From Bugula neritina (taxonomy: Eukaryota > Animalia > Bryozoa): a stretch of 64,000 nucleotides of DNA. The position numbers were made by a program, and so were the translations under genes. The stretch is from assembly GCA_964035545.1 (NCBI GenBank), contig OZ037767.1:10736581-10800580 (forward strand). Direction: 5' to 3'. Position 1 is the stretch's first letter; every line of letters begins with the position of its first letter. Below the pieces are notes generated by a model. It was not told where the DNA came from, did not search any database, and worked only from the letters and a program-made list of their open reading frames with translations. Positions 19,640-53,450 of this stretch are shown in pieces.

Positions 19640-22600
19640 TTAGTTCCCGTGTCTTTCCCGTTCAGCAGACGGCAGTAGTAGGTTTATCAAACCAAATGTG
19701 GTAGCCTGAGATTCTTGATATCCATTGAGCAGGTAACGGGACATCCAGCATGACTTATGCGTGTCCCGTAGCGCCAATAACCTACATATGGAATGTTAAC
19801 AATTTACCTTTAGCAGTCAATTGAGTATACATGCCCAACACACACAGCACTATAAGACTGAATTTCTGGTAACTTTTTGGCTTGAAATGGGTTTCAATTC
19901 TGACTTTGCAAATAATTTAGAATTTCAAAACAACTGATTTAAATAAAGACAAAATAATGCATCAAACTCCAGTTGTGTTCCAGTAAAGGGCAGATACTAT
20001 AGGTTTTTAGAGCAGTGTAAGCACTATTGTAAACTGCACTGTATTGTATGCTGTGATATACAGTAGGGGGTAGAGCATCGACTGTACTATTATACAGTAC
20101 ATAATCTACTATAATACAGCATCAAATGTACAGTACATTATATGGTACTATAATTTAGTATATTATTATACTGTCTTGCATGCATACTGTAGCACATCAT
20201 ACTGCGTGTATACTATTCTATGCTGTAGTGTACACTATTCTATGCTGTAGTGTATACTATTCTATGCTGTAGTGTACACTATTCTATGCTGTAGTGTACA
20301 CTATTCTATGCTGTAGTGTACACTATTCTATGCTGTAGTGTATACTATTCTATGCTGTAGTGTATACTATTCTATGCTGTAGTGTACACTATTCTATGCT
20401 GTAGTGTACACTATTCTATGCTGTAGTGTACACTATTCTATGCTGTAGTGTACACTATTCTATGCTGTAGTGTATACTATTCTATGCTGTAGTGTACACT
20501 ATTCTATGCTGTAGTGTATACTATTCTATGCTGTAGTGTATACTATTCTATGCTGTAGTGTATACTATTCTATGCTGTAGTGTACACTATTCTATGCTGC
20601 AGTGTACACTATTCTATGCTGTAGTGTATACTATTCTATGCTGTAGTGTACACCACACGTTGTATTGTAGCCACACTGTAACTGTTCTACTTTTCAGCTT
20701 TCTTTCTACACAACTTTTTAAGGAAAACATATTTTTTCACAAATTTATTGCATTGTTGAAGTATCTGAACTCAATTAGGCAAATTCCTCATGTATTACCA
20801 CATACTGTCAAGGTGTGCTTAAATATTTAACATTTTAGTTGTGTTACTATCAAATGAAAACCACAGTTTTACGTAAATCAGAAAAAAGTCACATTTTTGG
20901 TATATGGATATTGTACACACATCTGCACGTAAAATGCACGTCACGATTTTTTCATTTAATTCAAGCTCGTTCTTTGCAGAATTTATTATAACTTAAAACT
21001 GTTTTAAGGTATTTTACGTGAACTGCAAGGCATGCAGCTGAATATAAGCGGATGTAAGAGCTTACTGACGTACATGCATTCTTTAAAAAATTCAAGTAAA
21101 TATAAAACAGGATAGATACCACCCTTGAACAGGTAGGCTCAGAGTTTCACTTATAATCAGTAGCACATGGCCAAAAACTTGCTACTTCACAGTAAAGATA
21201 TGAATGCCTTTAAGAAATCTTATTTTGTATTCAATCATGAAAAGCATTAAACAGTTTTGGCTCTCAAGGCAATGCTCATAGTATAGCCCAAGTGGAAGGA
21301 CTGCTAGTAGCATTTTTCAGACTATTCTCTCTCTTTAATAAACTGAATAGTAAATTTGATAAATACCTCTGATGGTTGACAGCAAATCACTAACGAAACC
21401 TACCTGTTAGCTAAATCTGTTTTAGCTGTCACAGGTAAATTATCTATCCCGATATTTATGGTTTTTATAGAACCTGCCGGATCTGGGTTTTTACCTGCAG
21501 TGGTTAAAGCAAGACCAATTCTACAAAACAAGGCATATAAATGCTCACTACAAATGTAAATACAGTTGGTGATGGTATTGTGACAAATTCTACAGCACCA
21601 AATAAAAATTATAAGCCATCATTTCAATGGTGAGAACTTACATTGGAGAGAGAGGGAGAGGGAGAGGGAGAGGGAGAGGGAGAGGGAGAGGGAGAGGGAG
21701 AGGGAGAGGGAGAGGGAGAGGGAGAGGGAGAGGGAGAGGGAGAGGGAGAGGGAGAGGGAGAGGGAGAGGGAGAGGGAGAGGGAGAGGGAGAGGGAGAGGG
21801 AGAGGGAGAGGGAGAGGGAGAGGGAGAGGGAGAGGGAGAGGGAGAGGGAGAGGGAGAGGGAGAGGGAGAGGGAGAGGGAGAGGGAGAGGGAGAGGGAGAG
21901 GGAGAGGGAGAGGGAGAGGGAGAGGGAGAGGGAGAGGGAGAGGGAGAGGGAGAGGGAGAGGGAGAGGGAGAGGGAGAGGGAGAGGGAGAGGGAGAGGGAG
22001 AGGGAGAGGGAGAGGGAGAGGGAGAGGGAGAGGGAGAGGGAGAGGGAGAGGGAGAGGGAGAGGGAGAGGGAGAGGGAGAGGGAGAGGGAGAGGGAGAGGG
22101 AGAGGGAGAGGGAGAGGGAGAGGGAGAGGGAGAGGGAGAGGGAGAGGGAGAGGGAGAGGGAGAGGGAGAGGGAGAGGGAGAGGGAGAGGGAGAGGGAGAG
22201 GGAGAGGGAGAGGGAGAGGGAGAGGGAGAGGGAGAGGGAGAGGGAGAGGGAGAGGGAGAGGGAGAGGGAGAGGGAGAGGGAGAGGGAGAGGGAGAGGGAG
22301 AGGGAGAGGGAGAGGGAGAGGGAGAGGGAGAGGGAGAGGGAGAGGGAGAGGGAGAGGGAGAGGGAGAGGGAGAGGGAGAGGGAGAGGGAGAGGGAGAGGG
22401 AGAGGGAGAGGGAGAGGGAGAGGGAGAGGGAGAGGGAGAGGGAGAGGGAGAGGGAGAGGGAGAGGGAGAGGGAGAGGGAGAGGGAGAGGGAGAGGGAGAG
22501 GGAGAGGGAGAGGGAGAGGGAGAGGGAGAGGGAGAGGGAGAGGGAGAGGGAGAGGGAGAGGGAGAGGGAGAGGGAGAGGGAGAGGGAGAGGGAGAGGGAG

Positions 22601-52600: not shown

Positions 52601-53450
52601 ACTGTAGTAACTTACTCTCAGCTGTAGAAACTTACTCTCAGCTGTAGAAACTTACTCTTTCTGAGCTATGCAGTGTAATAGCTGCTCATTAAAAACAGCC
52701 ACAATCTCGGGATCTGTAGCTGACTCAAGGGCAGTTACCCCAGCCTCGTTCTTACAAGATGGATAAGCACCTAACGTTAGCAAAGTTCTCACCGAGTCTT
52801 TACTTCTTTCCTAAAAGGTCCAATCATTATTTTATTACAAACTTTGACTACTAGAATGATGGGTAAATTTTGTATCCTACTTAGAGTAACTGCAGTGCTA
52901 ACACTTGCTAGCAAGTGATAGCAAGTGTCGTCATCACAACACTTTAGTAGCTTCTGTAATATATTCACACTTACTATTCTATAACATTGGTATGAAAATG
53001 ACAAAATATGAGCTGTTTTTCTTTTTATCAATTGTCAAAGCCTAAAGTATTGAACGTAATGTAATTTGATGCGAACAAATGCTGATGTTGGCTCTAAATT
53101 AGAAAGCAATGATTTTAATACTTACATGTACAGCTAAATGTAGTATAGTACCAAACTCACAGCACTCACTTCGAAATAAGTTATTAAGAGTCAAGCCTAT
53201 CCCTTCATCATTCTCTTCACCTATAGTAAGCATACAGCAATTAAGGTTTTTTGAAAGAAAATAGTAGATTGAAATAGAATTTTAGACTTTTAATTTCAAC
53301 TAAAAATGGGATACGATGGATTGTAGACTAAATTAGCCATAAATTGTAGTGTTGCATACATTTCTTGACGGTTTTAACGACATTCTGAATTACATCTGCT
53401 CTTTCCGTGCGAACAGCAGTGACCAAGCTGTCTAAAGCATCGTTGATCAT
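19640..53450 (-). CDS. Ankyrin-repeat + glycoside hydrolase family 20 (hexosaminidase-like, probably catalytically inactive) protein, 946 aa, 22 coding exons
   Basis: Exons (minus strand): 53450-53360, 53220-53126, 52810-52656, 51512-51382, 50863-50728, 50311-50097, 49290-49099, 48120-48058, 47958-47778, 46095-45969, 45643-45521, 45103-45024, 43498-43352, 41758-41557, 38694-38648, 37850-37809, 36176-35990, 35408-35273, 31050-30944, 25197-25073, 21520-21404, 19781-19640. Total 2841 nt, open throughout, all GT..AG. Ankyrin motifs: [38 protein letters not shown]20 domain-2 motifs: LWPTPQ, YKLTI...[14 protein letters not shown]20 barrel motifs: [39 protein letters not shown]. Confidence 0.88.
20207..20653. 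repeat. 22-bp minisatellite (TAYACTATTCTATGCTGTAGTG)n
   Basis: About 20 near-identical units that differ mostly at one C/T position. Confidence 0.97.
21645..22987. repeat. 1.34-kb pure purine tract: (GGGAGA)n to ~22772, then (GA)n
   Basis: Directly visible, perfect repeat. Confidence 0.98.
24038..24274. repeat. (AT)n microsatellite with GT/AC interruptions
   Basis: Directly visible. Confidence 0.96.
24945..25083. repeat. 26-bp minisatellite spanning an exon/intron junction
   Basis: Unit GTGTTACCYGACAGYAGYATACTGAG, ~5 copies; the last copy overlaps the exon end at 25073. Confidence 0.92.
25647..25730. repeat. 22-bp tandem repeat (ATACTGTGACTATTTCATTACT)
   Basis: About 4 copies. Confidence 0.85.
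27377..27510 (+). mobile_element. MITE, same family, right end degraded
   Basis: TAGGTGCAGAAATGGAGAAAAGCCTGTGTTCTATATTAGAAATGTAGCAAAAGGAG... Confidence 0.7.
29489..29590 (+). mobile_element. MITE, same family, partial
   Basis: TAGGTGCAGTAATGGAGAAATTGAGAAAAGCCTGTGTTTTAGATTAGAAAGGTAGC... Confidence 0.7.
33841..34002 (+). mobile_element. MITE, same family as 47201-47366
   Basis: TAGGTGCAGCAACAGAAAAATTGAGAAAAGCCTGTG ... TTGCTCCACCACAGCACCTA. Confidence 0.75.
35140..35260. repeat. (AT)n plus degenerate (TATAG)n repeat next to a splice donor
   Basis: Directly visible. Confidence 0.9.
42328..42890. repeat. 14-bp minisatellite (CTGGACCACTATCT)n
   Basis: About 35-40 units, homogeneous in the centre and decaying at the edges. 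Confidence 0.96.
45800..45945. repeat. Degenerate 28-bp tandem repeat
   Basis: CTAGCAATACTAACAGTTACTACTGTGC-like units, ~5 copies, beginning ~25 nt from the donor at 45968. Confidence 0.8.
46164..46590 (+). mobile_element. tRNA-headed SINE (outer copy, split by an inner copy)
   Basis: A-box-like TGGTCTAAGGG and B-box GGTTCGAATCC. The body is shared with the copies at 46302-46520 and 51003-51190, and it resumes at ~46523. Confidence 0.8.
46302..46520 (-). mobile_element. tRNA-headed SINE, full-length copy inserted in inverted orientation into another copy
   Basis: Reverse complement reads GGAGCAGCCGTGGTCTAGGG...GGTGATGTTAGGAAGAGCATCCAGTCATAA...CACAGGGATAGCGACTATAAACTTGCGTGAG(T)9. It is flanked by TAAACAATTCCTT and TAAACAAATTCCTT. 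Confidence 0.82.
47201..47366 (+). mobile_element. MITE (~165 bp) with terminal inverted repeats
   Basis: Starts TAGGTGCAGTAATGGAGAAACTGAGA and ends TCTCAATTTCTCCACTACTGCTCCTA, with TA at both termini. Related copies at 27377, 29489 and 33841. Confidence 0.8.
48549..48790. mobile_element. MITE-like element with ~22-bp TIRs
   Basis: TGGGTCATTTTTGTTAATTTAGT ... ACTAAATTAAGTAAAATGACCCA. Confidence 0.65.
48810..49098. repeat. 17-bp minisatellite (ACACTAGATGTACTTAC)n
   Basis: About 12 or more units; the minus strand reads GTAAGTACATCTAGTGT. It abuts the exon ending at 49099. Confidence 0.92.
51003..51190 (+). mobile_element. tRNA-headed SINE, same family, internally deleted
   Basis: GGAGCAGGGATGGTGTAGTGGTTAGAG head, TGATGTTAGGAAGAGCATTCAGTCA core and CACAGGAATAGCGACTATAAACTT tail. 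Confidence 0.78.
52505..52657. repeat. 20-bp minisatellite (GCTGTAGAAACTTACTCTCA)n
   Basis: 7-8 units that begin at the splice donor at 52655 and decay away from it. Confidence 0.92.

Follow-up and report, generated by a model that had tools for sequence, protein, structure and literature searches.

What becomes of a glycosidase barrel when its catalytic residues are lost is the question raised by a gene in a 64,000-nucleotide stretch of the Bugula neritina genome (assembly GCA_964035545.1, contig OZ037767.1, positions 10,736,581 to 10,800,580 of the forward strand; this whole stretch is the window, and its own numbering is used below). The gene lies on the minus strand from 53450 to 19643, with its ATG at 53450 and its stop codon at 19643, and encodes a protein of about 940 residues in which an N-terminal helix and about four ankyrin repeats are followed by a Ser/acidic linker, a GH20 domain 2, a (beta/alpha)8 barrel of divergent sequence and, last, a helical tail. 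GH20 hexosaminidases have been intensively studied for their part in Tay-Sachs and Sandhoff disease, N-glycan trimming and chitin turnover. We propose, at a probability of about 0.72, that the locus is a single-copy, spliced and expressed gene for a conserved, non-hydrolytic, cytosolic protein, serving in binding or as a scaffold, of an ankyrin-pseudo-GH20 family, in which catalysis was lost on the animal stem.

GH20 catalysis depends on paired Asp-Glu residues together with a downstream Tyr (PMC11308363), and an initial annotation of this locus, made from the sequence letters, had reported that the HxGxDE motif with this pair was missing. We compared the protein with active relatives in MAFFT alignments of 21 and of 114 sequences, with column statistics over 84 animal sequences, and took as reference the 53 columns that do not vary among six active sequences. 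The active motif is anchored in these alignments by VHVGMDE of a bacterial relative, which aligns with VHIGADE and VHLGGDE, the Asp-Glu pair of solved GH20 enzymes. At this position the window protein reads Arg-Leu and neither residue of the pair is kept in any animal sequence (0/84), the Glu being replaced by Leu in 82 of 84. A profile-profile alignment of 79 animal against 9 active sequences (hhalign; probability 100%, E 1.1e-71, 502 columns including the helical tail) likewise pairs animal iGPrL with active vG~DE, so that the reported absence of the pair is borne out by both methods. Strand by strand, the motifs compare as follows.

Strand 2: LYMEHTFAY in active relatives; LYxR[FL] in animals.
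Strand 3: N-x-x-G-H and a loop of ~38 residues in active relatives; PVLD[VI] in animals, with the loop deleted.
Strand 4: G-x-D-E in active relatives; G-P-(R/K/Q)-L in animals; T-I-G-P-R-L-S in the window.
Strand 5: FWGD in active relatives; xLC in animals; LLLCG in the window.
Strand 6: EWGY in active relatives; EYG[FV] in animals; SYGY in the window.
Strand 8: DWGDxGH in active relatives; WSGxxH in animals; DWSGRGH in the window.

Around the former catalytic pair, the strand-2 Glu and His and the strand-3 Gln are kept in none of the 84 animal sequences. The strand-5 Trp has become Cys in 81 of 84, with the strand-5 Asp kept in none; the strand-6 Trp has become Tyr, with Trp likewise kept in none; and the strand-8 Asp is Gly in all 84. 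The GH-loop columns are gapped in 83-84 of the 84, active relatives having ~38 more residues here, as had been suspected when the segment between strands 3 and 4 was described as shortened. The strand-6 Tyr, which is the canonical downstream catalytic Tyr, has become Phe or Val and survives in 2% of animal sequences. The window protein does have a Tyr at this column (SYGY, 41557-41580), against Phe, Val or Ile in 98% of animal orthologs, and this is probably of no consequence without the Asp-Glu pair; its pocket columns for the strand-5 Trp, the strand-6 Trp and Tyr and the strand-8 Asp thus read Cys, Tyr, Tyr and Gly. What the animal proteins keep is the strand-1 Asp, the CPGT..WNS motif and three Trp residues, W654 (76%), W688 (100%) and W712 (99%), numbered as in the closest ortholog, that of Owenia (~41% identity over 657 aligned residues). 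The strand-1 Arg is kept in 38%, and an invariant G-C-P has been added in the animal clade (GCPEA). The GH20 catalytic apparatus is lost in the window protein and in the animal orthologs aligned, and the replacements are strongly conserved. We infer that the animal protein would not hydrolyse hexosaminides by the GH20 mechanism.

The fold was predicted for the Owenia ortholog, by AlphaFold2 with a 90-sequence alignment; the mean predicted local distance difference test score (pLDDT) was 89.2 and the predicted template-modelling score (pTM) 0.72. The model divides into ankyrin repeats (residues 1-228), a disordered linker (229-300), domain 2 (310-435), an eight-stranded barrel (444-715, pLDDT mostly above 90) and a helical bundle (718-915). 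Mapped onto it, the conserved columns sit where strands 1-8 reach their C-terminal ends, on the face that classically holds the active site. That the replacements are nearly invariant and sit at these strand ends argues for a conserved functional pocket and not for lost constraint. Foldseek gave GcnA and GH20C as top matches (E ~2e-17, target TM ~0.65), and superposition of the Owenia model by VIA-align gave the following.

GH20C: Z 26.0 (511 residues, 3.8 A).
GcnA: Z 24.6.
T. suis HEX-2 (HEXD-like): Z 23.0.
Lysosomal HexA/B: Z ~19.8.

This order agrees with the initial annotation, which had placed the barrel in a GcnA/HEXDC-like branch and not with HexA/B. The alignment to GcnA and GH20C runs through the C-terminal helical domain to the last residue, and window exons 17-21 match that part of the orthologs. 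In the PDB, a full-length family profile retrieved ankyrin proteins in overwhelming number; once the ankyrin part was cut off, the animal-only profile matched GH20 chains (6yhh, E 7.5e-20).

Is the gene read as drawn, and could a catalytic exon have been overlooked? Two RNA-seq libraries (labelled 'symbiont metagenome') contain about one tenth of the words of 41300-46200, which is roughly its exon share, while one DNA run contains this segment nearly whole. Reads from the RNA runs X1 and X2 and from the DNA run were assembled against 40250-46249 (6000 letters), a stretch that lies outside the ankyrin-GH20 junction. The RNA contigs come from a relative, are ~96-97% identical to the window and cover exons only. 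They support the minus-strand GT..AG joints 45969|45643, 45521|45103, 45024|43498 and 43352|41758, all of which our splice-site scan reproduces. One RNA contig of 1623 nt extends 1103 nt downstream of exon 13, consistent with exons 14-21 (927 nt) and a short 3' untranslated region. In RNA the exon with VPVLDISHN is joined directly to that with VTIGPRLS, and therefore no exon is hidden between them. A missed or alternative exon with the catalytic motif, a possibility that the initial annotation had itself raised, was accordingly rejected: besides the direct joint, all frames inside the gene are free of an [HNV]xGxDE motif, and a second copy was not found when the active-type segment was used in tblastn. 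In the relative's RNA contigs a Tyr stands for the His of 'DISHN' (43428), and therefore this His, the one that had been lined up with that of the GH loop, differs even between close relatives. Of the ten differences listed between the window and the RNA contigs in exons 12-13, eight are synonymous. With the near invariance of the replacements in 84 animal sequences, this indicates purifying selection, and agrees with the earlier suggestion that the gene is maintained.

A phase-aware splice-site scan linked 21 exons in one open frame of ~939 codons. The initial annotation had counted 22 exons and 946 residues; its single spliced open reading frame (ORF) stands, and the difference in count is within the uncertainty of three acceptor choices. 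Every motif that it quoted was found in minus-strand stop-to-stop frames. The boundaries of exons 5-7 and the acceptor of exon 20 were placed by splice consensus only. The exons, all on the minus strand, are listed here with the evidence for each.

Exon 1, 53360-53450, minus: start ATG and conserved N-terminal helix (tblastn to residues 1-30 of >10 orthologs; donor by splice scan).
Exon 2, 53126-53220, minus: first ankyrin-like repeat (tblastn; splice scan).
Exon 3, 52656-52810, minus: ankyrin region, with IAQKE (tblastn E 4.5e-7 to Owenia; splice scan).
Exon 4, 51382-51512, minus: ankyrin repeat (Pfam Ank E 7.6e-9; tblastn).
Exon 5, 50728-50881 (acceptor 50881 or 50890), minus: ankyrin repeat (Pfam Ank E 0.002; tblastn; splice scan).
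Exon 6, 50097-50311, minus: Ser/acidic linker (phase-compatible splice sites; ortholog linker 229-300 has pLDDT <50, disordered).
Exon 7, 49099-49290, minus: end of linker and start of GH20 domain 2 (tblastn; splice scan).
Exon 8, 47778-47958, minus: middle of GH20 domain 2 (tblastn to several orthologs; splice scan).
Exon 9, 45969-46095, minus: end of GH20 domain 2 (PF02838 E 8.2e-5; RNA contig piece 45969-46095; joint 45969|45643).
Exon 10, 45521-45643, minus: barrel strand 1 (RNA joints on both sides; alignment).
Exon 11, 45024-45103, minus: barrel strand 2, VHLYTKI…WQFPYTR where active relatives have LYMEHTFAY (RNA joints on both sides; alignment).
Exon 12, 43352-43498, minus: barrel strand 3, without the ~38-residue GH loop (RNA joints on both sides; alignments).
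Exon 13, 41557-41758, minus: barrel strands 4-6, KVTIGPRLS, LLLCG and SYGY (RNA joint 43352|41758; contig ends at a GTAAGT donor; alignments).
Exon 14, 38648-38694, minus (tblastn to three orthologs; splice scan).
Exon 15, 37809-37850, minus: 42 nt, barrel strand 7 (AG and GTAAGT sites; tblastn).
Exon 16, 35990-36176, minus: barrel strand 8, with GMCWN (translation; 77 homologs, best full-length E 1.7e-11).
Exon 17, 35273-35408, minus: start of C-terminal helical domain (tblastn; splice scan).
Exon 18, 30944-31050, minus: helical domain (tblastn; donor CAG|GTTAGC).
Exon 19, 25073-25197, minus: helical domain (tblastn to three orthologs; splice scan).
Exon 20, 21404-21547 (acceptor 21547 or 21520), minus: helical domain (tblastn E 8e-10; own-genome search; splice scan).
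Exon 21, 19643-19781, minus: C-terminus and stop codon (tblastn; splice scan).

The sequence searches used single window exons or database orthologs as queries, rather than the joined window exons. With full-length orthologs, tblastn matched the window colinearly from first Met to stop, and the small exons 14 and 19 were located in this way. Pfam Ank, Ank_2, Ank_3, Ank_4 and Ank_5 all match window exons, as expected of tandem 33-residue ankyrin repeats (Ank at 51296-51571, E 7.6e-9, with a second match at 50676-50816), and GH20 domain 2 (PF02838) matches at 45918-46115 (E 8.2e-5). Exon by exon, Pfam gave no match in the barrel exons, and phmmer with single exons gave none in the PDB. PF00728 run against the whole 216 Mb genome recovered the canonical GH20 genes and not the ankyrin-GH20 locus, whose barrel has diverged too far for this model to recognise. 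A search of its own genome shows the gene to be single-copy; a paralog elsewhere was rejected, as the only matches outside the window were to the ankyrin region.

The family became visible through one barrel exon. An exhaustive search with the 62 residues of 35990-36175 gave 77 matches. Some of them lie at about position 650-720 of proteins of 860-950 residues, which belong to oyster, whelk, annelids, a nemertean, cricket, sea spider, horseshoe crabs, argonaut, a priapulid, crinoid, starfish and acorn worms (hemichordates); others are a choanoflagellate protein and bacterial proteins of ~600 residues, in which Pfam recognises most of the catalytic domain. Further members came from a word search that started from the Owenia protein: chitons, many bivalves and gastropods, cockroach, termite, locusts, stick insects, bugs, thrips, lice, mayfly, dragonflies, springtails, many Hymenoptera and amphioxus. 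Members from vertebrates, Diptera or nematodes were absent from the matches of these searches, which is suggestive only. Ankyrin repeats and GH20 had been proposed to form one protein, and this is the architecture of more than 80 orthologs of 860-1050 residues, several of them on intron-less transcript contigs of ~3 kb. In the orthologs, Pfam finds ankyrin repeats at 1e-19 to 1e-28, GH20 domain 2 above cut-off, and PF00728 over its first ~38 positions only. The motifs of the orthogroup occur in the window in order: the N-terminal helix, LLWPxPQ, LYxR[FL], PVLD, GPxL, xLC, EYG, CPGT..WNS.AGCPEA, WSG..H and NLP.T.[KR]TD.ANR. The first 30 residues of the window protein align with the conserved N-terminal helix, in keeping with the earlier statement that there is no hydrophobic signal peptide; because it has none, and carries ankyrin repeats, the protein would be expected in the cytosol.

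This branch of GH20 seems to have been overlooked, being present in databases with no family name. The initial annotation had guessed that homologs would be unannotated invertebrate proteins, and database names do run to 'uncharacterized', 'Beta-hexosaminidase bacterial type N-terminal domain-containing protein' and 'tankyrase'; literature searches (ankyrin with GH20 or hexosaminidase, Glyco_hydro_20b with ankyrin, pseudoenzyme with hexosaminidase) found no paper on the family. Some orthologs are named Tankyrase-1/2 or VAPYRIN from their ankyrin repeats alone. Tankyrase SAM and PARP domains are absent from the members scanned, in which Pfam shows only ankyrin and GH20 domains (including the 'tankyrase' of Gryllus and of Nymphon). 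UniRef entries from Mytilus, Lymnaea, Polyplax and Tegillarca are named beta-N-acetylhexosaminidase though they do not have the catalytic pair. To judge from the alignments, this label is probably wrong for the animal members, and automatic names of the Enzyme Commission type should not be trusted for them. A recent phylogeny of eukaryotic GH20 dropped sequences longer than 750 residues (PMC11308363), and would therefore have excluded the proteins of this family.

When was catalysis lost? Seven choanoflagellate orthologs have the ankyrin-GH20 architecture with intact catalytic motifs. The first, of 942 residues with ankyrin repeats, runs colinear with its animal counterparts from residue 9 on (36% identity over the N-terminal 214 residues), and Pfam recognises most of its catalytic domain. 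The six others have ankyrin repeats and an intact VGLDET, and DWGDxGH is present too, except in the truncated P0229. We rejected the idea that the choanoflagellate sequence stems from contamination, because the architecture is encoded in the genomes of S. rosetta (PTSG_02041) and M. brevicollis (MONBRDRAFT_28983). Among proteins that carry no ankyrin repeats, the nearest relatives are GH20 proteins of ~630 residues from bacteria and archaea, of which more than 3000 were found. In a quick maximum-likelihood IQ-TREE tree of these three groups, unrooted, the animal sequences form one clade (support of 100 by the SH-aLRT, a Shimodaira-Hasegawa-like approximate likelihood ratio test); the stem of this clade is long, and the branching order within it resembles that of the species. 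Choanoflagellates and animals are taken as sisters because they share the ankyrin module, a relationship that the unrooted three-group tree alone cannot show. As the choanoflagellate orthologs combine this architecture with intact catalytic motifs, the fusion would have come first and the loss of catalysis later. The simplest history suggested by these comparisons is that the fusion is ancient and the family was inherited vertically across bilaterian animals.

Two environmental proteins, P0221 (712 residues) and P0222 (677 residues), have no ankyrin match (Pfam was run on P0221 only) and group within the choanoflagellate clade. They keep the GH loop and read G-M-D-M and G-M-G-Q for G-x-D-E, so that the catalytic pair may have been lost independently in the choanoflagellate branch.

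We suggest the following course of events. A bacterial-type (GcnA-type) GH20 protein would have gained its ankyrin repeats by fusion before the lineages of animals and choanoflagellates parted. On the animal stem, Asp-Glu would have been replaced by Arg/Lys/Gln-Leu, the catalytic Tyr by Phe or Val, the strand-5 Trp by Cys, the strand-6 Trp by Tyr and the strand-8 Asp by Gly, and the GH loop deleted; afterwards the gene would have been inherited vertically under constraint, its new residues nearly invariant. The remodelled pocket, with its three conserved Trp, would bind some ligand, and through the ankyrin repeats the barrel module would be tethered to a cytosolic protein partner.

Several points weigh against this proposal of a conserved, non-hydrolytic fusion protein. 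The fold was predicted from the Owenia protein, which shares ~41% identity with the window protein over the aligned exons, and not from the window protein itself; the residue at the former Asp position is variable (R/K/Q/A/C/T), and so may not be a binding residue; database models from Ptychodera, Saccoglossus and Nilaparvata (~660 residues) have no ankyrin part, so that shorter isoforms may exist; and the ankyrin-to-GH20 splice is not seen in reads from this species, the assembled stretch being 40250-46249. The last two of these would also suit a locus with two transcription units, one for the ankyrin exons (53450-50728) and another for the GH20 exons (50311-19643). However, the exons share strand, order and phase with no other gene between them, and the choanoflagellates and more than 80 orthologs, ~3 kb transcript-derived contigs among them, encode both halves in one ORF; we consider two genes very unlikely. 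Still more improbable is that the protein keeps hexosaminidase activity by means of non-canonical residues, or that the gene is a decaying pseudogene. The automatic naming of some UniRef family entries as beta-N-acetylhexosaminidase speaks for activity, but the Asp-Glu pair and the Tyr that GH20 catalysis needs are all replaced, while open frames, spliced RNA and mostly synonymous differences from the relative speak against decay.

What might the barrel do? It may, though this is less likely than not, have been re-purposed, its pocket of Cys, Arg and Trp binding or acting on a cytosolic ligand that possibly bears N-acetylglucosamine (GlcNAc). It would then be a bilaterian-wide and so far unrecognised component of signalling or quality control, which vertebrates, Drosophila and C. 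elegans appear to do without. The barrel could instead be a new enzyme that uses the nearly invariant strand-5 Cys, the Cys of GCPEA, the strand-2 Arg, and a Ser and a His close to strands 4 and 8 as a catalytic site whose chemistry or substrate would be different. The replacements are as conserved as catalytic residues would be (C600 in 81/84, L567 in 82/84, G690 in 84/84, GCP invariant), they lie in the model on the classical active-site face, and the long stem, with conservation after it, is compatible with a functional shift. Yet Pfam and PDB profile searches found no known catalytic motif beyond strand 3, Leu at the acid/base position and Gly at strand 8 do not point to catalysis, and conservation this strong would suit a binding site equally, which leaves a new enzyme rather unlikely. 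The initial annotation had offered, as an example, a reader of O-GlcNAc or free glycans, and this is its weak point. In the manner of chitinase-like lectins, such a reader would bind GlcNAc, N-acetylgalactosamine (GalNAc) or O-GlcNAc without cutting while the ankyrin repeats relay the signal. The fold is that of GlcNAc-binding enzymes, the putative cytosolic location would suit such a role, and W654, W688, W712, the strand-1 Asp and CPGT..WNS are kept; but most residues that hold the sugar are not, the acetamido-binding Asp, the Tyr, the strand-5 and strand-6 Trp and the strand-8 Asp all being replaced and the strand-1 Arg present in only 38% of animal sequences. As the invariant Asp, Glu, Tyr, two Trp and a further Asp are replaced, canonical GlcNAc binding is not favoured, and we regard a sugar reader as unlikely.

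The DNA around the gene is AT-rich (~33% G+C). A flavin-containing monooxygenase gene (FMO-like, E 4.7e-75) at 15359-18726 on the plus strand converges on its 3' end. On its own strand, 1.4 kb upstream of the start codon, lies a non-long-terminal-repeat (non-LTR) retrotransposon with an uninterrupted ORF of 901 residues for endonuclease and reverse transcriptase (54893-57595, minus strand; RVT_1 E 5.9e-40). Two simple repeats lie in the intron between exons 19 and 20, a GA-rich one of ~1.4 kb (21624-23050) and a TA-rich one of ~0.4 kb (23985-24430; YIYI runs in frame), and these account for the long spurious ORFs listed there. In the intron between exons 11 and 12, the segment 43450-44050 has a read depth several hundred times that of its flanks in three runs, with many internal joints; it is a highly repeated element. 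Elsewhere in the assembly, a small contig (G000:C105:14205-17133; loci L001, L002 and L011) carries two strong GH20 matches (E 1e-56 and 4e-46) interrupted by TAA and TAG, never by TGA; this looks like a ciliate-type code, and the contig may be a contaminant or an associated protist.

The wider value of the family is as a natural experiment, in which one architecture is apparently active in choanoflagellates, to judge by its motifs, and catalytically stripped yet strongly conserved in animals. Such a pair permits a direct test of the role of a glycosidase barrel after hydrolysis ends, and of what the ankyrin module recruits.

Among known systems, the closest in structure are GcnA of Streptococcus gordonii (2epk/2epl) and GH20C of S. 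pneumoniae (5a6b), three-domain bacterial GH20 beta-N-acetylhexosaminidases. The animal protein shares with them the GH20 domain 2, the (beta/alpha)8 barrel and the C-terminal helical domain, over ~510 residues at a root mean square deviation of 3.7-3.8 A. It differs from them in identity (12-14%), in having neither the Asp-Glu pair nor the GH loop, and in its added ankyrin module and linker. The ~630-residue GH20 proteins in metagenome-assembled genomes of Methylomirabilales, Anaerolineae, Acidobacteriota, Actinomycetota and Promethearchaeota ('family 20 glycosylhydrolase') have a homologous body with catalytic motifs intact, and no ankyrin repeats. The choanoflagellate ankyrin-GH20 proteins (S. 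rosetta, M. brevicollis, S. kvevrii and others) share the full architecture and a colinear N-terminal helix. Unlike the animal proteins, they keep LYMEHTFAY, the GH loop, VGLDET, FWxD, EWGY and DWGDxGH, and are therefore probably active enzymes.

Hexosaminidase D, or GH20 subfamily 1, is a nucleocytoplasmic branch, separate from the lysosomal enzymes HexA/B (PMC11308363). T. suis HEX-2 (8qk1) matches the Owenia model in its barrel and tail over 366 residues; kinship with HEXD here means this structural match together with the published classification. In contrast to the window protein, HEXD-type proteins have neither GH20 domain 2 nor ankyrin repeats, and keep His/Asn-x-Gly-x-Asp-Glu. Barrels that have lost their catalytic acid and been kept for a non-hydrolytic role are known from the chitinase-like lectins (GH18 pseudo-chitinases such as YKL-40) and from the Klotho-type pseudo-glycosidases. 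The chitinase-like lectins belong to a different fold family, are secreted and keep most of their sugar-binding residues, whereas the ankyrin-GH20 protein is apparently cytosolic and has had its sugar pocket largely replaced.

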